This document shows positions 42,116-56,059 of a stretch of 64,000 nucleotides of DNA, in pieces. Each line of letters opens with the position of its first letter. Position 1 is the stretch's first letter. Below the pieces are notes generated by a model. The model had not been told where the DNA came from. It saw nothing but the letters and a program-made list of their open reading frames with translations, and made no database searches. This stretch comes from Iphione sp. A-MEVVRFRX5 (taxonomy: Eukaryota): assembly GCA_976226885.1 (NCBI GenBank), contig OZ320320.1, forward strand, positions 52,948,001 through 53,012,000, read 5' to 3'. The position numbers were made by a program, and so were the translations under genes.

Positions 42116-45100
42116 GCTGTGCCGGCCGTCCGTCTTGGTTCTTTTGGTGCGCACGAGGTGGCGGGAGCAATGTTGTGTTGCGGCTTAGACGGGTTGATGT
42201 ATGGAGAGCTGGAAGGCGGTGGTGGGATTCTGGTTGGTGTTTTGAGGTAAACGGGAGGCTGTAGTGGTGGTGATGGTGAAGCAAGAGAGCTCAGATTTTG
42301 GCCAATGGAGGAGAGGACTAGTGGTTAATTGTCATGGTGTGTGGAAGGTGGTAAATGATCCGGTCTGTAAGTGAAGTCAGTTGTGAGTTTCGCGAAGAGA
42401 GAGATGACAGAGGTTAGCGATAGATGGAAACGAACTAAGAAATAGTCAAGATCGGTTGTTAAAGCTCATTATGATCGATGGAGAGCAGCGGAGCTGCGAG
42501 ATCGCAGATGGTTCCCGGTGGTGGAGGGCAAGGGTATCAACGGTTGAACGTTGCGGGTGTAAACTAGTGAGGGATGAGGACTTGCTGTAGCCATAGGTGA
42601 TGGGCGTGTGTGTGTGTGGGGGGGGGAGGTGAGCAGAATGTGTTGGTGGTGTGTTCGCAGGCTCGGAGAGGTAGTAGTGACAGGATAGGGATTGACGGTA
42701 CAGGGGAATATTAGCAGGAACCGGTTGTATTATATCAAAGGCTTTTTTGTCAGGGATGGAAACCGCTGATAAAAGAGGACAGCATAGTGGGGAGTTGGTT
42801 ATGGATATAGGGCGAGTCCTTTTGTTACCTTTTTCAAAATATAGAGCTAAAGTGCACTTGGTACAGTCTGAATTTCAAAAGAGCTCAATTATGCACAATA
42901 ATGTTTATATATACACATGTGCACAGTTGGGAAGGTTCTAGAGCAGATGGAATAGTAGAATGTGAGCTATATTGTGCAGCAGTCTTTATCTCAGTTGTGT
43001 GCAGCAGGTTATGCGTTGTATTGTGCAGCAGTGATAGCCCCATGTGGTTACTGTGAGCTGTATTTGCCCCGGCCAGAGTAATAACAAATATTGTACAGCA
43101 AACCTAACCCCTACTAGTTAGCGTGTTTGTACGGGAAACCTAGAGCATGCGGGTTAACGAAACGTGTGTGGTTTTATGCAGTAATCACAGAATCAGCTGT
43201 GTGAGTTGTATTACTCAGTGGTCTTACCGCTACCGTCGCATAGTAGTATGGGGAAATGTGTATTTGAGAACGGCAGGCATCCAAACAAGCAGTGTGCGGG
43301 ATTATTTGAATTTAACTGGAGAATTTAGATTTAGGACATTCGCCTCTTTGATGAAGAACATGCACGGTAAGGGAGAGACACCGTTACCCATATCAAGTTT
43401 TGCTACTGCAAATGCTGACACCTGGCGGTTTACTAAATAACTACTGTACTCTCTCACTCTGGCATGCTCAGTCTTTTCCTGTCGGCTTCTGTTTTAAATC
43501 GTTCGTGTCCTTAAATTCTTTCTTCCTCTCTGTGCCTCGTTACTCTTCGTCTTGACTATTCACATAGTGCCTTTTTCTCATTCTTCTTTTCAACTTTTCG
43601 TTCCCTTCTCTTGATTTTACTCTTCTTCCAAGTCCCGTGCCTGTCTCCCTCCGTCATGAAAGCTTCCCTATTCCTCATTTTCTGCTTCCTCTCTTTACAT
43701 ACCGCAGACCTACTGGCGTGGCTTTTGGCACGGCCTACTCTTAGTCATACAAAAGATGTGTTCTTAGCACAGGTACAGCGCACATTACATGCATCACTCG
43801 ATCTGAAAGATTCTGCTTTCGATGCATGACAGCAAATGTATGTGCGATGGTTTGAATGTAAGTTTTCAGACGGAAAGGCTATAGATTTGCAGTGTTCGGA
43901 TGTGTGTGTTTGTGTGTTTGTGATGTTGCTGTAGTACACAGGAGGGTTTGTATATGCCCTTTTAAGTGCGCATCAGTGTGTGAATAATTGTGTCTCTGTT
44001 ATAGTTTTCTGTTTCTTCAGGCGTGACTAAACTGTGTGTATGACATACTACCGACAGCCTGTGGGTAAACATGTACATGTGTATGCATATTTGGATATAG
44101 GTTCACTTTATGTCCATACGTCCGTGCAGGTGTGGTTCCTCCTGAATGTACTGGTTAATGTGGGAGTGCATATATATATTCATGTATACATACATGCATC
44201 TTTGTGCAGTATTATGACCAGATAGGTGTCAAACTTTAACCTTTACACCACAATTCACGTCTCTTCGACAGTTGCCACGCAACCATCGGGTGAGCCCAAT
44301 ACTTAACTCTTGCTTTGGAACTCACCTGGGTAGTGGCTTCCTGTGATGTTAGCGCTCCCACCTGTCCAGGTAACCAGCACACCTGTAAAAGAATGTGTAT
44401 CTATTCATTTCTGCGGACCAGGTGTAAGCTTGGATTACGGAAGTTGACCTTGCTCATTTAAGTCCTCATACTATTATCAATACCCTCTCGAATTACGTGT
44501 AGTGAAACCTGAAACCTTCGCCGACTCAGGGGACGCCCCGACTAGGATCACAAGAATTCCACACACCTTCCGGGGCTTCCCACGGAATAAGCTGCTTTGT
44601 ATGCCTAGTGTTACTGTGTTAGATACATGTACTGATCTGCTGGTTATCGATGAAGGGTGTATGTTAAAATAATTCAAAAGTAATTGAAACAGTCCAGTTT
44701 GACTCCTGCCAAACATGTCTTTCGTATCATAAGAGAGATCCTATCTAGATATGATACCATTAATCCTTGGATTCATCCAACATGTGTAACTGAATGATTT
44801 GCATTCTGAAGTAGTCTATCACAGGTTCACTTAAAATGAGATAGAGCTAAGGCGCATACTTACATAGAGTAAACTAACGGTAAGCTGTACAAAGCAGACA
44901 AAACCAGAGATTGAAATATGGCATCAACCAGCCAAAGCCAAGAATGTATAGCACGCTACTTAGAGCATCAAAAAGTTTTCAGAGCATCAAATGTTTTAGC
45001 CAATGCAGTCACCTGCCACATGTTGGTGTAACCAACACTAATTTAGTGAATGGCGTAACCAGATTCCAGAAATGTTTGTAGTTGGCAAGAGCGTCTTCTG

Positions 45101-45414
45101 CCATCTGCCACTGCTATATTGGTGGATGGCAGAAGCATATCTAACAATGGTACCTTCCCAATATGTCTGGCATATTGCTACAGGACTGTAAATTATGAAT
45201 CACCATGTTAGTATTTTTTAAAGAACCCTACAAAAGGCAGTAAGGACAATCTAGAGACTACAGTCAGATCTGTCGAACAGAACCTACATAGCAAGGACGA
45301 TAATGAAGAGGCAACTTTACTGAAATCAGTGATGTCGCTATATAAATCATATTGTCATAAGATATCTGACATATAATGGTCTGCGGTACTCTGCTATTGA
45401 ACATACACTATATA

Positions 45415-45591
45415 CAGTGGAGACTCTTTTTACGACCACCACTTGGGACCAAGCTCAAGTGGTCGTATTGGCAAATTTGGTCATAACTTGATCACAATTT
45501 CTATAGAAACTATGATTTTTGTTCCCATCTCAGTTGGTCTCAAATAGAGAATGGTCACAAATCGATGTGGTCGTAAATAGGATCTGCATTG
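45415..45591. mobile_element. MITE with TA TSD, same family as 26686-26853
   Basis: ta|CAGTGGAGAC ... GGTCGTAAATAGGATCTGCATTG|ta. Confidence 0.7.
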
Positions 45592-45767
45592 TATACCCGA
45601 TTTCTCGTTTATCCAGCAAACCTGACAATTTCCTCGCCAACTGTGATCACCAACCTATGGATTTTAGTACATATGATTCATAGTAGATATCTGACAGTTT
45701 GTCTGAAATTTCACATATTCTGCTTAGATCATGGTCAGTGACAAGCTTAAAACATAAGTTTAAGGAA

Positions 45768-46953
45768 AGCTGCAGAAAACAAATGTTTCCCATATCAAAT
45801 GTTGGTATGTTTGGTAATTTTTTTAGCATGGTTTTAAAAGGCTTCACCAACTGACTCTATCTGTATGACTGACAATATCATCTGCAAAGTTCTACTCATT
45901 GTTATATATGCACGCTCATAAAAGTTGTCTGTTTTCTTTACTATTGGTATGGTAATAAATTCCAAGACCAATATTTGTTTCAGAGAGCCCTGCAGAAGTC
46001 AATGTGGACAATCAAGGGTCTGCAGTGACCTCTGTAGTAGAAGAGAACCTAGATAGCAAGAAAGCTTCTGATGAGGGAAATCTACATAGCAAAACTCAAA
46101 CTAGTGGAGTCAACACAGCAGAACTTGAGAAGATACGTCAAAAGTTTGTCAAGTATGATGTTGACAACTCAGGTTATGTAGAATTGGCTGATGTAAAAGG
46201 GCTTCTCAAATTTTTGCCAGAAGATGGACAAGTAGCTGCTTGGAATGTGAGTTTTCTTGTTTTTTTTAAATAGATTTTTGGGAAAATTAGCCACTTATCT
46301 ATCAAATGCTAGGCAGTTATGTCCTTAGAATATTTTGTTCTGTACATTCATAATCCACACTATGCTGTATAAGCTGTAATACATTTCAAACTTGGTTTTA
46401 GTGAAAGAAATTTACAGGCATCAAAGAGACAACAACAAACCATGCATCATTATAACATGTTTCATAAAATTATCATTAATTGGTACATTCAGTACGCCAC
46501 AGTCTAAAGGAGGTTCCTTCAAAGACACTACATCTTTGCAGCTCTTATCAGCAGCAGATAAGTCCGGTGATGGAAAAATTACTTGGGATGAATTCAGACA
46601 ATATTTCTTGCCTTCAAAAGAACCAAAGAGCACAGGTAAGTTTATGTTTGGCTGATCACATAAGCCTTTAACAAGCAGAAAGGCTGAATGACTTACTACC
46701 TTACAGACTAAAACAGTATTTAGCGGCTTAATTGGCTTTGGGTGTGTGCACACGGGGACAAGGTTACAACGAAAGACTAATGAACAGACCATCAGTCAAC
46801 ATCTTATGGTGTGGATTAACTCTTTTATTCCATCATAATGATTTTCAGTCTAGGTAGTTAACAAAGGTTATCAGTCTAATTAGTCAACTAGACTTTTTTC
46901 TTAACAAGCCATTTCTGTGTTCAACTGATTCATTGTGATTGCTGTTGGCATTA
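45768..46953 (+). repeat. Left copy of ~1.19-kb direct duplication flanking the LINE
   Basis: Aligns colinearly with 54212-55889 (offset 8444 at the start) and ends exactly at the LINE 3' tail. Confidence 0.97.
45984..46635 (+). CDS. Two internal exons of a host EF-hand Ca-binding protein (45984-46246, 46542-46635), copy 1
   Basis: EF loops DVDNSGYVELAD and DKSGDGKITWDE lie 35 aa apart after splicing. Splice sites ttgtttcag|, |gtgagt, ctttgcag|, |gtaagt. Phase 1 in, phase 1 out, 357 nt total. Confidence 0.85.
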
Positions 46954-47537
46954 GATAGATAGATAACTTTATTGTCCTCTCTGTGAAGCTACAAAGTTTT
47001 CATTGGACAGTTATGTTGAACAACATGCGAGTCAACATTCACACAGTAATATCATGACTTGAAACAATTGAACATAATTACATACAGCGACATATGACGC
47101 CTTCTTACATACAGTTGGGTATTGTTGCAAGGAATCACCAATCATCAGCATACTGCATTCACAATTCATGCGACATATACAGGTGAGTTCTTTGATCCAA
47201 CATATGAAACAGCTCGCACACAGACAGCGGCAATAGTTGGGCTGGTTTACCTATATACTGGTGCCATGGTACATGTATTAGTTACCTTTCAAGTGTTATA
47301 ATAATTACAGGTCTTGAACCTGTCATAACGCCTTAGGCAAGAACTACCCGTCATGCAAAAAATAAACCATGATAACCCAAGAATGTTAATCTGCTTCCTT
47401 ACTCTCTCTGTTGTGATAATACGAGACTATCGGCCCATGTACCCCCCAGAAAGTTTTATTGCAGATTATTGCAGTCATGAACCATAGCCAGTAGTGTGAC
47501 TGTAGGGGAAAGCGCTGCCACTTCTGGCTCCTTCAAC

Positions 47538-50283
47538 CTAGTCGCATTCGCCCCGGCTCTGCAACCATACCCTGAAATTTGGTTTGGGATGCTGCCTGAG
47601 GTTCAACAGCAGATCATTCCAGTCTTGTACACCCTTGTGCCTAAGATGGCGAGCATTGAAACTTGAACGTGGCCAGTCACAACTGATCTTTACTGTTGTT
47701 CCCCTTCTAGTGCCAGTGTTTTTTGCCCTCGGGAGTGCCTCGAGAGCCACCAGTTTATGGATCACAGATAGAGAATGATGGGCAACTAGCGTATCCACCC
47801 TCTCAATGTTGTGTTTGGCGCAGATGGCTTTAGCCGTTTGGCGCGGGGTGTTTTGCAATGAAACCCTCACGCAGCGATTCAAATGAATCTGCATCTTCAT
47901 CACACATGACTTGGAGCAACCATAGAGGAGGATCACATTGTATTGCAGGTGTGTATACACCAGAGATTTGAACAAGATCAGTCTCGAGGCCAGCGGCAGG
48001 AAACGCTTTGTTCTCCTGATGCTTAGGGCCGCACTCCACATGCGATCCTTCCTCCCCTTTACAGCCTCAGTGAATCTTAGCTTGGAGTCAATAGTGTATC
48101 TGAGTATTCGCATACTCATTGCCATTTCCATCTTCTCCCCGTTGATGTTGATATCAAATTCAGCTCCACTAGCCTTTCCAAGTGGTAGATAACAGCACTT
48201 GCTGACACTTAACAATAGGCCAACACTAGCGCACCACTTTGAAACAGCATTGATGGTGGTTTGGCATGACCATCTTAACCACAATAGATCTCTTGCATCT
48301 ACCAAGATGGTCAGGTCATCCGCATACAAGATAGTGAAGCATTCCTTTGGAATGAACTTCAATATCTCATCTATCTCTGTCTATCTCAAGGATACAAAAA
48401 GCATTCGGACCGAAAATCGATCCCTGCGGAACACCATGATTGATACCTCTTCGATTGGAATCCTCACCCAGCACCTGCACAAATTGTGTACGGTCAGTGA
48501 AGTAGTCCCTAATAAGTCTGCAGACCTTAGTATTTGCACCTACAGATGTCAGTCTTCTGAGGACAACACTCGCAGGCACCAGATCAAAGGCCTTCTGCAT
48601 GTCGAAGGCCATGAGGCATACGTAGGCACCCTTGTTTAGCAGCTCGGTTGCCTTTGCCATGATTGCAGCGATCGCAGCCTCGGTGCTTCTGCCCTTGCAG
48701 AAGCCGTGTTGTTGTGTGCTCCGGAATGCCTTGCCCTCTAGTTTCTGCATCAAAGTGTTAAGAAACCACGCCTCAAATATTTTCCCCGGCAAGGGGAGAA
48801 TTGACACTGGTCTGTAGTTTCCTACAACATTCCTATCCCCCCTTTTGAAGAGCGGGGTGACACGGGCACATTTCCACTCATTCGGGTAGTTCCCCGTGTC
48901 AACTATCCGGGCAAAGATCCAGTGTACCAGATCTAATACCAAGAGAAGTAGTGGTTTCATCACCTTGGTGGGAATCCCTTGTACCCCCGAGGCTTTTTTG
49001 ACCTTCTGCTTCACCACATAAGGTCTCAGTTCAGCAGGCGGTGGCACTTCTATGTCAAAAGAAGGCGCAGTTGTAGCTGATGACCTGTTTGTTTGCGGTC
49101 CTAGCGGCGGTGCCAGTTCGGACACTTTGTCAATAAAGAAGTCATTGAACCTGACTGCGAGGCAACGCACCTCCTCCACATTTTGGGGATCAGCCTGTGG
49201 CAATGTAGTTCGGGTTACTCCCTTACCCATTGCTTCTTTCAGAGCTGCCCACAATTTGGCAGAGTCTCCTCCCGCCTCTCGTAGCCTGTCACTCCAATAC
49301 AATTTCCGGTCTATCCTAATCCCTTTTTTGACCTTTCTGTTATAGAACTGAAAGATCCTATGGGCATCCTCACAACGCTCCTTCTTCCACTTATTGAAGA
49401 AGTAGGCACGCTCTTTGATGAGCTCTAGCATCCCAACTGATGGGCAAAAGCCCTCTAAGTCGCATATTGTGGACACCCTCCTCGCAGGACACCATTCCTC
49501 AAGGATATTGCGGGTAGCCTCTTTGAAATTCGTCCAGCATACGGATGGATCCGGATCAAATCTGAGCCCATCGGCACGTAGGCGATCGTGAATTTGATCA
49601 ATGTCCGCCTTCTGCCATTTCCTGACCAACCTGGACTCCTTGTGCCTTCTCAGGGCACCTTTCTTTATCCACATTTTTACTGGAAGGTGGTCACTTAGGA
49701 ACCACTCTAATGTGGATACACTCAGAGCCCCGTTGTAATTGATCCAGATGTGGTCTAGACAACGATCTGACTCGATCATTCTGCAGTCAGTCACCTGTTG
49801 ACTGAAGCCCTTGGACGATAACAGGTCTGTGATGCTTGTTCCTGCTTTGGCCTTACCATAAAAGTCATAGTTCATGTCACCTGCAATAGTGACATCCCTG
49901 TTCCTAATGGCAAGGCAAGAGTCCACTACCCTGTCAAGCTCTCTTAGTGAGTCACTCATTTTGTTGTGAGGCGGTCTGTAAACAGCTACCATGGCATGAG
50001 GTCTTCTCTTACCAATTTTGACAACAACACTCAGGGCTTCACAGTCACTATCCGAGATTGTAAACTGCATTTCGTCCCCAAATCTCTTGCTCTTGCTGTA
50101 CCTGTCGGCGCGAACAAGGTTGTATCCGGAGATGGTTACCTCACCATTGGTGTGATTGGTATTTAACCAGGTCTCCGTTATGATGCATATATCAACGTCT
50201 ACTTCCAGGAGATGACGTCTCAGATCGTCCACCTTTTTGGCTAAACTGCGTACGTTGTACACAACCAGTGTGACTCCAGGCAT
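47538..50283 (-). pseudogene. LINE ORF2: apurinic endonuclease + reverse transcriptase, broken near 48400
   Basis: APE motifs YNVRSL, ITETWL, VYRPP, GDMN, LDHIW, SDHLPV. RT motifs NYRPVSILP, QHGF, AFDMQKAFD, GVPQGS, YADD. Frameshift plus stop between GVPQGSIFGP and ILYADD. Confidence 0.95.
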
Positions 50284-51500
50284 GGTTATCCCCTACAGTC
50301 ACACACTATGTATCCCCTATCAAATCTCCCTGATAATTGAAGGAATCTATCCAAAATTACCTTCAGTATACAAACAGTTTGGTTGGCGCTCGGTCAGTCA
50401 TTTTACTTGCCCCCCCATTATTCTGATATACACATGTTTACTCTAAGCACACTCTTTTCCATGCTATTGACGTTCATATAACAAAAAACGCCCACCGGTG
50501 GAACTCTACCTCTTTCAGGCCCTTTCAAATACGAGAGCTGCAGGTACATCATAACAACCATACACATAGGGACGTTGGACACAACCAAGGTATTGTGACT
50601 GACATGTATGGCAGACCATCATTGAAAAGATCGACACACCACCACACATATACACAACCATAGACATTGTTAGCAATAATAGCTTCCAGACTTTGCACAA
50701 CATGAAGACAGTACAGCACAGTGACAAGACATGCTACAACGTATATTCTTTCTGGCGAAACTGCATCTCAAGCATGACAATCCAGGCAAGTCTTATGTAG
50801 CCACTAACACCCTTTAAGAAAGCATCTCTTTGTGGTAATTGAATTAAAACTTTTATTTTCAAATACTGTAATTGTGATACTTAAAACAAATAGTGCTAGC
50901 AAACATCCAGGGACTTCCTAACCACCCCTAACTGAAGAGTTTACCTAGTAATCATTTTAGGCTGGCCAATAACTGCAGAGGAACTTGGCCTAGGAACAAT
51001 CCTGCACATTTGAGTACAAAAACAGAAAAAGGATTTGACAGCACTCACTGTATAAGAATTACCACCAACTGTAGATCAATGTCAGAAATAAATCTAACTA
51101 AGGGATTGTCGTCATCTCACATGTATCATGACAATAGTGATTGATTAAACAAGTTATAACATGCTATTGTAGAGCTAAAGCACCCCTATTATTAACTATT
51201 GACTCCACATAACTACTTTAAAGAAGCACAAAAACCCACAATAATTTGTTACAATTTGTATGCTGGTTTTGCTAGAGACAACAGAGACATGATACATGGT
51301 ACGTCAGATTATTATAGAAAATTAAATCTAAACAGAGAATCAAATACCGTACTCTTAATAGAGCAGTAGCAATGATTGTTAAACACTTGTCTTTTAACAG
51401 TTATGGATGGTTCCGCCCGTAGCACCGTAGTGCGACAAAAACAATCATTGAGCCGAAAGTGGTACAGGGTTTGACGACAGTTAACATCACGTTATTGCGC

Positions 51501-52244
51501 TTATGAAGGCCTTGGGTCAGGTACACCAGGGATAGACATTTTTTTGGCAAAAGCTTGCAAAAAGATAGCAATGGACCTTGTCCATACAGCACTCGTTTCA
51601 TTAGTCGGGCGCACCCCATCAACCCCTAAAAATTTCCCCCAGGTAGAGATATTAATATCATTACCCATACCAATACTGTTCACTGGCAGATCTAAACTTG
51701 GTGGCGGAATACCAAATTGCAGTGCTAACATTTTACAGAAGCTGTTGTGGGCGGCAATCATAGCGTTCACAATGACTTGTTCATCAGGATCAATAATGTC
51801 AGGTTCGAGTCTGCTCAGCAAAATGCCCGACATTGGACAGCATACAAGATGTGGACCCATGTTGAAAGGCTCCATGATCCAGTCCTTCAGTTTGCCAATG
51901 TAGGTAGATAAACATTCCAGGTAAAGCATTGGGCTCCTGAATCGTGGGGTCCATTGGCTGGCCTCTTTCCTCAGGATTTCTTGTAGACTAATGGCTATCA
52001 CTACTATGTCATAATTTGTAACATCAATGTACATGCGTTGACGCCACAGTTTCTTATAAGAAGCCTTGTTTATCTGCATGACGGGAATTGTTAAGGGCGG
52101 CAGTTCTGCATTTGCCAAGTCCTCCACCGTACTTGTCATTCTGCTGTCAATCACCAGTAAGACCCTCGGTCTGAAGCAGCTGCAAACATTGTGACCGCTG
52201 ATGATTGACCACTCTGCAAAAACATATGCAAGCACATGTAGCAT
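51501..52244 (-). CDS. LINE-borne SGNH/GDSL esterase-like ORF with degenerate catalytic blocks
   Basis: VLLVIDSR (block I GDS-like), YDIVVIAISLQE (block III strand), GVDGVRP (block V DGxHP-like) followed by a helix. Open 247 codons; a possible acceptor at 52171 means the true start is uncertain. Confidence 0.6.
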   Translation of the reverse strand: MLHVLAYVFAEWSIISGHNVCSCFRPRVLLVIDSRMTSTVEDLANAELPPLTIPVMQINKASYKKLWRQRMYIDVTNYDIVVIAISLQEILRKEASQWTPRFRSPMLYLECLSTYIGKLKDWIMEPFNMGPHLVCCPMSGILLSRLEPDIIDPDEQVIVNAMIAAHNSFCKMLALQFGIPPPSLDLPVNSIGMGNDINISTWGKFLGVDGVRPTNETSAVWTRSIAIFLQAFAKKMSIPGVPDPRPS

Positions 52245-52507
52245 AACAAAATATAGTCAGCCGTACCTATTAGCAAGCAATCAAAACTCCACATGATAAC
52301 AGTATTCTGATGGTAGTCTAATTTGTTGTTCAAAAGGCATTTACAAACTGTTGTACTGGCTATCCTTACATCAACTGATTGTATGCCCACAAGAGCTCCA
52401 AAAATTGCTCCACTATTACAGCAAAAAAGTTTATCCAGGATACCATGATAACAAACTGAGCAGTTTGAAACATAGAACCACACTGTGATTAATTCAGCAG
52501 AGTTCGT

Positions 52508-54130
52508 TTAAGCATTTTCATTTAGTAAAGCATCACAAAGTCGCATCGGCACAGTTCCTATCAGGTTACGACTGGTTAGAACAGCCAGCTCCGACCATTC
52601 ATCATCTAACCTGACACCAGCTCCCCACGATTGGTCGGCATTAGCGTAGAGTAGATGTAGATCACCAGATTTACTTAAAGCAGATGATAGAACCTCAGAA
52701 TATTGTAGTTTAGCACAATAGATATCCTCAAGAATTACCTCTGAATTCACTTCCCATTCTTGATTTGTTGGAATAGTATTTCCGATTCGTTTAGCCTCGA
52801 ACGCGCTCCTTGCTCTGCGAATGTCCTTCACCTTGCCACCACGCTCAGTGACGCGCGATTTGCAGATGTTGAATGCACTCACCACACTACAGAAACTTTC
52901 TCCCTTCCAAAGGAAAGGAGACTCCTCTAAGGGTGAGAGACCTGGTGAATCACAATTAAAAGCCAAAATGTTGCCCTCCGTCCTAGTGGCGGATGTCCCT
53001 GGCTTGATGGCATCAGGCAGAAATACCTCATCTGACGGAGAGAAGCACTCGCCATCAATATGTATGTTAACACCTTTGACAATCGCGCATTTGCCCATAC
53101 CCTTTGCAGCAGATGCTACCCGTTGTTGTCTCCTATGTTTTTCCATCGCACGCTGCGGGATATCTTCTCTGACATAAATAGCCTTCTATTTATGCATACC
53201 TGACATCCGCAATCTGTGACGGAGTAGTTGGTCCCTGACTTCCTTCGTAGTGAACACAATGCCGAGTTTGAGCTGGTTACCCAAATTACCCAGCCACAGA
53301 GTGTCGACTACGTTGTCACGTCTGATCCCAGCGACTTTCCAAGCCATCTTCAAGAGAAAAACGTGACAATCCCTTACTTCACTCTTCTTGACACCCTCAA
53401 CGACCACCTTTCTTGAACGCTCTTCAATTTCCACACGACATAGATCATCATCGAGTCTTGACGCCTTATCTTCAAGATATTTAACTTTGGCATCCAACCT
53501 ACCCACAGTGATGCTAGTTGTGTTGACGATGCGCAATGCGCTTTGCAGATTTTGGCGCAGCACAGCATTCTCACCTCTTAGATCCTTGATCTCTTCTCTC
53601 AGACCTCCAATCTCAGAGTTGTAGTGGTTCCTGAGTGCCACTAACCCCTCACATAGCGTTTCGAGTCCACCGATGTCCATCTGCCCTCCTCTGCTGTCAG
53701 TGCCACTCTGATGACAGCTGTCACTGCCATGTCTGCCTTGGCCTGCGTTGTTTCCTGGTAATGAGTCACCTCCAGGGACTGGGCCAGCTCCAGCACCACT
53801 GGCAAGCCAATCATCGCCCGAAGCATTCTGCTCCTCATCTCCCTTAGCGAGACTGTCATGGTCCCGTCTGCTGTTAGCTGCTCCCACCTCTAGGCCTGAG
53901 CTGTCAACAGTGTCAACGATGTCACTAGTTGCAGGTTAGTCTTTGTTTACGTTCTGCCCTACCGGTGCATTTTCAATGGCAACTTCATCGGTTCCCCTAT
54001 TATCACTCGGCTTTCTTGGGCCTCGGCTGGTTGATCTTCCTGAGCCCCTTGGACGACCTCTAGGACGCAGAGTTGGTGTCTCTACTCCCTCCGAGGCTTG
54101 ATTCTGTGGTTTAATCGAGTTTTTGCCCAT
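52508..54130 (-). pseudogene. LINE ORF1 (~540 codons): AT-hook, coiled coil, RRM-like domain, C-terminal NADAR domain; two in-frame stops
   Basis: The track ORFs 53936-54130, 53186-53887 and 52508-53146 are all in one frame, separated by single TAA (53936-8) and TAG (53186-8) codons. Motifs: RPRGRPR AT-hook, heptads, EERSRKVVVEGV...IYVREDIP RRM-like signature, NADAR motifs at ~52520-52970. Confidence 0.85.
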
Positions 54131-54427
54131 TGTTGCGGCTGTGCGAGCAATCGTCCTGACCGAGCACCGTTACCGTGCAACCTCACGCTACCGCCATTAT
54201 AGTAACATTCCAGCTGCAGATTACAAATGTTTCCCATATCAAATGTTGGTATGTTTGGTAATTTTTTTAGCATGGTTTTAAAAGGCTTCACCAACTGACT
54301 CTATCTGTATGACTGACAATATTATCTGCAAAGTTCTACTCATTGTTATATATGTACGCTCATAAAAGTTGTTTGTTTTCTTTACTATTGGTATGGTAAT
54401 AAATTCCAAGACCAACATTTGTTTCAG

Positions 54428-55078
54428 AGAGCCCTGCAGAAGTCAATGTGGACAATCAAGGGTCTGCAGTGACCTCTGTAGTAGAAGAGAACCTAGATAG
54501 CAAGAAAGCTTCTGATGAGGGAAATCTACAAAGCAAAACTCAAACTAGTGGAGTCAATACAGCAGAACTTGAGAAGATACGTCAAAAGTTTGTCAAGTAT
54601 GATGTTGACAACTCAGGTTATGTAGAATTGGCTGATGTAAAAGGGCTTCTCAAATTTTTGCCAGAAGATGGACAAGTAGCTGCTTGGAATGTGAGTTTTC
54701 TTATTTTTCTAAATAGATTTTTGGGAAAATTAGCTTTTTATCTATCAAATGCTAGGCAGTTATGTCCTTAGAATATTTTGTTCTGTACATTCATAATCCA
54801 CACTATGCTGAATAAGCTCTAATACATTTCAAACTTGGTTTTAGTGAAAGAAATTTACGGGCATCAAAGAGACAACAACAAACCATGTATCATTATAATA
54901 TGTTTCATAAAATTATCATTAATTGGTATGTTCAGTATGCCACGGTCTGAAGGAGGTTCCATCAAAGACACTACATCTTTGCAGCTCTTATCAGCAGCAG
55001 ATAAGTCCGGTGATGGAAAAATTACTTGGGATGAATTCAGGCAATATTTCTTGCCTTCAAAAGAACCAAAGAGCACAG
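54428..55078 (+). CDS. Duplicated EF-hand exon pair (54428-54690, 54985-55078), copy 2
   Basis: Same four splice sites intact, frame open, 3 substitutions versus copy 1 in 357 nt (H>Q plus two synonymous). Confidence 0.75.
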
Positions 55079-55326
55079 GTAAGTTTATGTTTGGCTAATC
55101 ACATTAGCCTTTAACAAGCAGAAAGGCTGAATGACTTACTACCTTACAGACTAAAACAGTTTTTAGCGGCTTAATTGGCTTTGAGTGTGTGCACACAGGG
55201 ACAAGGTTACAACGAAAGACTAACGAACAGACCATCAGTCAACATCTTATGGTGTGGATTAACTCTTTTATTCCATCATAATGATTTTCAGTCTAGGTAG
55301 TTAACATAGGTTATCAGTCTAATTAG

Positions 55327-55791
55327 CTCTGATTTGTGGGAGAGGTGGGTTTATACTGCAAATTGGTGGGTTTATACCACAAATCAGGGGGTTTATACTT
55401 CAAAAGGGTGTCACAAAGTACTTGGAGGGGTGGAACACTTCCAAAGGGACAGTTTAGAGGTGTGGGAGAGGAGCATTACCACTTCTATCAAGCACTATAG
55501 GGACAGGCTGGAGGGGACAGTGCCTTCAAAGGGACAGCTCAGAGTTGTGGGAGAGAAGTGCTACCACATCTATCACATTTCCATACCTACTTGTTCAGTC
55601 TTAGCTACTTGTAAAATATGTCTTTAGGCCACATCTTACTGTATGACTTGTAAAACATGGCCCTAGGAATCATTCTACATGATAACCTGTATAGAGTGGC
55701 CTCAGGCCACAAAGTCTCTAATAGGGACAAGCCTCCATTAGGGACATTTTGGCTAAGAACAGAGGGTGTCCCTAATAGAGGCGTTCCACTG
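55327..55791 (-). mobile_element. One-ended DNA-element fragment flanked by a 20-bp direct repeat
   Basis: TAGGTTATCAGTCTAATTAG at 55307-55326 and 55792-55811. The right end reads as a Tc1/mariner-type MITE terminus (CAGTGGAACGCCTCTATTAGGGACA on the minus strand) abutting TA; no matching left terminus. Confidence 0.7.
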
Positions 55792-56059
55792 TAGGTTATC
55801 AGTCTAATTAGTCAACTAGACTTTTTTCTTAACAAGCCATTTCTGTGTTCGACTGATTCGTAGGTGGTTTGCGATTGCTGTTGGCGTTAATACTGTTAAT
55901 GGTCATGTGGGTACCACTGTGAACAGACAGACTGTTCCTCATATAAATGTGTGCACGACTGATTACAGTCAGTGGTAATAATTGTCTGTGGCGCCATCTT
56001 CAGAGAAAAGCCCAACTAAAAGAATACCTTGTGAAACTGCCGACGGCATGAGCGGCAGA

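Follow-up and report, generated by a model that had tools for sequence, protein, structure and literature searches.

How did an exon pair encoding two EF-hands come to stand on both sides of a retroelement, and are both copies now part of one protein? The question is raised by a locus of Iphione sp. A-MEVVRFRX5 at which a two-exon EF-hand module occurs twice, the copies being separated by an antisense long interspersed nuclear element (LINE). The window that we analysed is a stretch of 64,000 nucleotides (nt) (assembly GCA_976226885.1, contig OZ320320.1, positions 52,948,001 to 53,012,000; window positions are used below), and it belongs to contig C17 of the 1.18-Gb, 89-contig animal assembly in which all of our genome searches were made. 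The explanation that we tentatively favour, giving it a little under an even chance, is that one retrotransposition doubled the EF-hand pair in frame and that both modules are used in tandem. A fuller version has a single event with a kilobase-long target-site duplication (TSD) double the whole EF-hand pair without loss of frame, with tandem splicing of the two copies and their retention by selection; it may also hold but is somewhat more doubtful, and both proposals are drawn from the sequence.

The limits of the exons were read from the sequence and define the following module copies:

45984-46246, plus strand: exon A, copy 1 (263 nt), with phase-1 acceptor tttcag/AG and phase-0 donor AAT/gtgagt
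46247-46541, plus strand: enclosed intron, copy 1 (295 nt), with 16 mismatches and 1 indel relative to copy 2
46542-46635, plus strand: exon B, copy 1 (94 nt), with phase-0 acceptor ttgcag/CTC and phase-1 donor CAG/gtaagt
54428-54690, plus strand: exon A, copy 2, with Gln at codon 34 and one synonymous difference
54985-55078, plus strand: exon B, copy 2, with one synonymous difference

Together the two exons make up 263 + 94 = 357 nt, or 119 codons, with intron phases 1/0/1. The first 2 nt of exon A belong to a split codon, as does the final 1 nt of exon B, so that the module runs from phase 1 to phase 1, the symmetry which a preliminary description of this locus had pointed out. Both copies are open, with a stop-free translation, and the predicted 46635/54428 junction joins G to AG as GAG (Glu), so splicing across the retroelement would, on paper, keep the frame as that description had proposed. 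It had also held that the splice sites survive in both copies, and in our alignment all four sites and their near context are identical, GT-AG and of U2-type consensus. For exon A, the nearest differences fall at -12 of the acceptor (T/C, two pyrimidines) and +13 of the donor; for exon B, they fall at -24 of the acceptor and +19 of the donor. Every splice site in each copy has more than 200 nt of intron context. The new intron separating the modules, 46636-54427, is 7,792 nt long.

At the protein level, exon A codes a 47-aa linker, with His at codon 34 in copy 1, followed by EF-hand 1 with the loop DVDNSGYVELAD, while exon B codes EF-hand 2 with the loop DKSGDGKITWDE. Pfam scans, run on exon A and exon B separately, placed EF-hand loop 1 at residues 48-77 of exon A and loop 2 at residues 2-22 of exon B, and the two exons match positions 2-29 and 46-66, respectively, of one EF-hand-pair model. 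Exon B reaches a score of 26.1 with EF-hand_5 (curated cut-off 25.9), and exon A scores 22.6 with EF-hand_7 (cut-off 30) and 21.9 with EF-hand_6 (cut-off 25). In both copies, loops 1 and 2 fit the pattern D-x-[DNS]-x-[DNSG]-G-x-[ILV]-x-x-x-[ED]. Position 12 of loop 1 is Asp, not Glu, and the same is true of the modules of a paralogous gene on contig C15 that is described below.

The module copies are parts of a longer duplicated segment, which is arranged around the retroelement as follows:

45768-46952, plus strand: segment copy 1 (1,185 bp), comprising 216 nt of upstream intron, exon A, the enclosed intron, exon B and 317 nt of downstream intron
46953-54197, minus strand: full-length non-LTR (long terminal repeat) retroelement of 7.2 kb, antisense to the exons
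54198-54211, unstranded: filler of 14 nt between the 5' end of the element and copy 2
54212-55888, plus strand: segment copy 2, with a later 466-bp repeat inside it and an 8-nt indel near its end
55327-55792, unstranded: dispersed repeat of 466 bp, in copy 2 only, with a 19-nt TSD at 55308-55326 and 55793-55811

Repeat finding and BLAST recovered a direct duplication of 45768-46883 and 54212-55326 (1116 nt, 97.0% identical, 1 gap) together with a second matching block, 46865-46931 and 55793-55859, and the homology could be extended by eye in a MAFFT alignment to 46952 and 55888, crossing the 8-nt indel. What had been called an antisense LINE between the copies proved to be a full-length non-LTR element, and we fixed its termini by aligning it to a copy at C15:67263508-67272699, which is its only close copy in the genome (91-93% identical; distant copies are many). 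The 3' end, at 46953, reads ...AATAAAGTT(ATCT)3 and the 5' end, at 54197, begins with ATGGCGGTAGCG...; segment copy 1 ends at 46952, directly adjoining the 3' end, and copy 2 starts at 54212, 14 nt beyond the 5' end. In the alignments the 14-nt filler is absent both from the related element copy and from segment copy 1. The 5' junction thus carries extra nucleotides, and the 3' junction shows a 1-nt microhomology. Further, the upstream flank, one copy of the segment and the downstream flank are colinear, so that an uninterrupted empty site can be reconstructed.

This geometry of two direct repeats 8.4 kb apart fits a TSD of 1,185 bp produced by one retrotransposition event, since the repeats abut both element termini as these are set by the close genomic copy, and it agrees with the single event suggested in the preliminary description. 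LINE target-site duplications are typically about 5-20 bp, and 1,185 bp lies outside their usual range (tens of bp at most). A tandem duplication followed by an independent LINE insertion was rejected as an account, as the element sits exactly at the junction of the units and lacks a short TSD. The 466-bp repeat, from a family with more than 1,000 candidate copies in the genome that are 90-96% identical, inserted after the duplication, because copy 1 lacks it and it has its own 19-nt TSD. This later insertion, a neutral divergence of 3-4% between the copies and a frameshift that breaks ORF2 of the element (open reading frame 2; near 48362-48367) indicate that the duplication is not recent. We found no run of N in or near the duplicated region, and a genome search revealed no third copy or haplotig of the segment elsewhere in the assembly.

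Exact alignment of the copies confirmed the earlier count of three differences in 357 exon positions, one of them non-synonymous: 46087 T/A (His to Gln), 46114 C/T (synonymous) and 46598 A/G (synonymous). The copies can thus be told apart by, for instance, T at 46087 against A at 54531 and A at 46598 against G at 55041. The enclosed intron, for which about 17 differences in 295 nt had been estimated by eye, has 16 mismatches at 294 aligned sites plus 1 indel (5.4%) and is the most diverged stretch, while the outer, flanking intron parts have 14-16 differences at 512 sites, giving 30-32 of 806 for all non-coding positions. The contrast between exons and enclosed intron is significant in a Fisher test on the exact alignment (p = 0.0006; 0.004 with adjacent changes collapsed), as is that between exons and all non-coding sequence (p = 0.0025; 0.014 when collapsed); against the flanks only, p is 0.03, or 0.076 with adjacent changes collapsed.

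The distribution of the changes within the exons is informative about their cause. By the Nei-Gojobori method the proportions of differing synonymous (pS) and non-synonymous (pN) sites are 0.026 and 0.0036, a ratio of 0.14. If both copies had drifted at the non-coding rate, 10.4 non-synonymous differences would be expected and 1 was observed (P of 1 or fewer = 0.0004; range for this model 0.0004-0.004), whereas the 2 synonymous differences look neutral against an expectation of 2.9. With only one copy neutral, 5.2 non-synonymous differences would be expected against the 1 observed (P = 0.035; range 0.004-0.11 depending on the neutral rate). The sole amino-acid change sits in the linker, outside the EF-hands. 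The exon/intron contrast is thus real, and it is best read as purifying selection, because the deficit falls on non-synonymous sites while synonymous sites look neutral. The preliminary description had gone further and proposed purifying selection on both copies; a pN/pS of 0.14 and the P of 0.0004 speak for constraint, but its extension to both copies is marginal given the one-copy-neutral P of 0.035, so that selection on both is suggested, not established.

Genome searches found the module at only one other locus, C15:81505612-81527066, where a paralogous gene forms a tandem array of at least 7 two-exon modules, six of which have symmetric phase-1 ends, with at least 14 EF-hands. Public protein collections contain no close relative of this gene. 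The array opens with an ATG exon, half a module, that codes EF-hand 1 (MASKKVIREMF...) and is followed by exon B. Next come 5 complete modules of 288, 291, 288, 288 and 273 nt, all multiples of 3 with symmetric phase-1 ends, and the last module opens in phase 1 and has a stop codon in its exon B, 10 nt short of a consensus donor that has been retained. The units measure 1.1-1.5 kb and are mutually alignable through their introns at 70-85% identity; a 10-kb gap separates modules 2 and 3, and no element is present at the unit junctions. In the youngest module pair of this array the exons are 7.0% diverged against 12.5% for non-coding sequence (p = 0.008). The window module has the same make-up as this family (two exons, phases 1/0/1, a length of 357 nt that is a multiple of 3), and its ratio of non-synonymous to synonymous substitution rates (dN/dS) against the C15 modules, about 0.32, points to a coding history. 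Since the C15 paralogue is an array of such modules, in-frame tandem multiplication is, judging from its gene structure, the normal architecture of the family.

We propose that a single insertion of the 7.2-kb non-LTR retroelement would have made an unusually long, 1,185-bp duplication of the target-site type, and that the duplicated stretch would have held, in full, a two-exon module for an EF-hand pair from a multi-EF-hand gene that is lineage-specific. Exon definition would then by default splice both modules in tandem across the 7.8-kb intron 46636-54427, so that the protein would gain a second EF-hand pair, linked via the Glu codon, and both copies may since have been held under purifying selection. 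Proteins with multiplied modules should be viable, because the C15 paralogue has at least 7 modules in tandem. There is also no AATAAA or ATTAAA between exon B of copy 1 and the element, so a transcript made before the insertion must have run past the duplicated segment and transcripts should not end there today.

A close mechanistic parallel comes from human CDKL5, where a de novo L1 insertion carries a 119-bp target-site duplication containing the 35-nt exon 3 (Hiatt et al. 2021, PMC8087252). Reverse-transcription PCR showed that both exon copies are spliced in tandem, with a frameshift that is pathogenic, in a case that is possibly mosaic (PMC8087252). The two loci are alike in having a LINE insertion of about 7 kb in an intron and a flanking direct duplication that includes a whole exon with its splice sites. 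However, the CDKL5 duplication is 119 bp long, de novo and frame-shifting and holds one exon, whereas the one described here is ten times longer (1,185 bp), in frame and holds two exons; it is also old (3-4% diverged) and apparently under purifying selection, and its splicing is predicted where that of CDKL5 was seen. Because the duplicated CDKL5 exon is spliced in tandem, the splicing that we propose is possible in practice (PMC8087252). Our literature search for exons duplicated by a LINE's own TSD gave CDKL5 only, and no evolutionary example.

Several results weigh against the proposal of a tandemly used, selected module pair. The window module has no Met, and neither a 5' coding exon nor a 3' exon of the gene was found in the window or nearby, which leaves the locus a putative gene. 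A genome search with the C15 start-codon exon (MASKK...) gave no counterpart on C17 or in the window; comparison of the window with 50 kb of the C15 paralogue by tblastx and blastn returned only the modules and shared repeats. Likewise, no credible 5' or 3' exon emerged from stop-to-stop ORFs, from a scan with the EF-loop pattern, from the genome search with that C15 start exon or from another with exon B, and a scan for ATG plus phase-1 donor gave no credible start exon. One candidate start exon, 43836-43857, was discarded, as it would give TAG at the junction. Neither an orthologue nor a predicted protein is present in public protein collections: a HMMER search with exon A gave matches at 32-38% identity to generic multi-EF-hand proteins and to nothing else, a bacterial YadA-like protein ranking first, and a protein atlas gave generic EF-hand clusters only. 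With regard to the element, the roughly 40 nt beside the ends of its C15 copy contain no flanking direct repeat of at least 5 nt, nor is that copy flanked by a long repeat within 3 kb; since this is the only close copy, the 1.19-kb duplication would be atypical, a one-off for this element family. The antisense element also contains seven poly(A)-signal hexamers (AATAAA/ATTAAA) in gene sense, which could truncate transcripts. Finally, the case for constraint on both copies depends on 3 substitutions, with P = 0.06-0.11 under conservative neutral rates.

A further exon fragment lies upstream of segment copy 1:

45216-45320, plus strand: incomplete, older copy that covers the acceptor region and some 100 nt at the start of exon A (71% identical, E = 8e-13)

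This copy keeps the frame across one 3-nt gap, and it is probably a dead relic, as its acceptor is shifted by 2 nt. It suggests that the locus had already undergone a local duplication.

The seven hexamers are compatible with a reading in which just one module is used, the other being skipped or lying beyond a premature poly(A) site in the element and drifting, with the low exon divergence then reflecting constraint on the used copy plus chance. About 4.5-5.2 non-synonymous differences would be expected in this case against the 1 observed, and the resulting P values of 0.035-0.06, or 0.11 with the flank-only rate, leave it some room. We nevertheless regard it as unlikely, given that synonymous divergence (2.6%) is near the intron level and non-synonymous divergence is 0.36%, and that identical splice sites within at least 200 nt of intron of the same origin bear no sequence sign of selective skipping. 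The modules might instead be either/or cassettes, with isoforms that differ by His or Gln at one linker position. Tandemly duplicated exons often become mutually exclusive, a general tendency that would favour such a reading, and every combination of modules at this locus is in frame. Mutually exclusive exons resemble the window modules in being adjacent, homologous and of equal length and phase, but the window module lacks an exclusion-enforcing feature: it is frame-symmetric, all of its sites are U2-type GT-AG and the intron between the copies has 7,792 nt. With a difference of one residue, the products would be nearly identical, and selection would not keep both. Given also that the paralogue uses its modules additively, we consider either/or use distinctly improbable.

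It would seem slightly less improbable, if still quite unlikely, that the locus is a remnant without function, holding an orphan module that was copied from the C15 family and lacks a working 5' end, in which the exon/intron contrast arose by chance or from mutation-rate heterogeneity. The missing Met, upstream start and downstream exon, the lack of any other module on C17, the probably dead partial exon A copy 660 nt upstream and the weak contrast with the flanks alone (p = 0.03-0.08) are all compatible with decay. Yet both 119-codon frames are open with canonical Ca-binding loops and consensus splice sites, and the non-synonymous deficit (P = 0.0004-0.004) and the dN/dS of about 0.32 against the C15 modules are the marks of a coding sequence. 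Divergence of 3% falls within the heterozygosity range of marine invertebrates, and the two copies could on that ground be haplotypes of a single-copy segment that were assembled in tandem, the contrast being allelic polymorphism. We think such an artefact very unlikely, because both junctions fall to the base on true element termini, with no overlap to mislead an assembler, and there is neither a gap nor a third copy or haplotig in the assembly; moreover, copy 2 has acquired a later repeat insertion, complete with a TSD. Gene conversion in place of selection, which the preliminary description had offered as an alternative, has possible substrates in direct repeats that are 97% identical and 8.4 kb apart. 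However, its tracts would have to coincide with the two exons yet leave out the 295-nt enclosed intron, where divergence is highest (5.4%), and synonymous sites are not depleted. The longest identical tract between the copies, 144 nt, is unremarkable and expected by chance (P = 0.37), and on these tract statistics we rejected conversion, which appears hardly credible as the reason that the exons are alike.

The usual explanation of domain repeats is unequal recombination between introns, and LINEs are credited with exon shuffling via 3' transduction. If the fuller version, with both copies spliced in tandem and kept by selection, is true, the window would hold an evolutionary, non-pathogenic example of domain multiplication mediated by a LINE TSD, and thus a route to repeat proteins that is distinct both from unequal crossing-over and from L1 3' transduction. 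A case that is fixed, in frame and maintained by selection would demonstrate that an accident like that in CDKL5 can add a working domain. The C15 array and the window share an EF-hand-pair module with phases 1/0/1, units of about 1.1-1.5 kb and exons that are less diverged than introns. They differ in that the C15 units abut with no element at their junctions, as with unequal recombination or replication-based duplication, whereas the window units are parted by exactly one full-length retroelement. The window repeats resemble ordinary LINE TSDs in ending exactly at the element termini but are about 100 times the usual length. The system would come with a built-in molecular clock in its two repeat copies and a within-genome control in the element-free C15 array, and three diagnostic bases distinguish the two copies.

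The reading frames of the retroelement are as follows:

47538-48362 and 48367-50283, minus strand: ORF2, coding an apurinic-type endonuclease (APE) and a reverse transcriptase (RT), with a frame shift from the second interval into the first
51501-52244, minus strand: ORF of 247 aa without a Pfam match, upstream of the APE/RT ORF
52508-53146, minus strand: NADAR-domain ORF (Pfam E = 2e-11), upstream of the APE/RT ORF
53186-53887, minus strand: coiled-coil ORF

Outside the duplication and the element, 45389-45593 is a short dispersed repeat with two more copies in the region of the C15 paralogue (81511728-81511918 and 81530326-81530511; about 75% identical).

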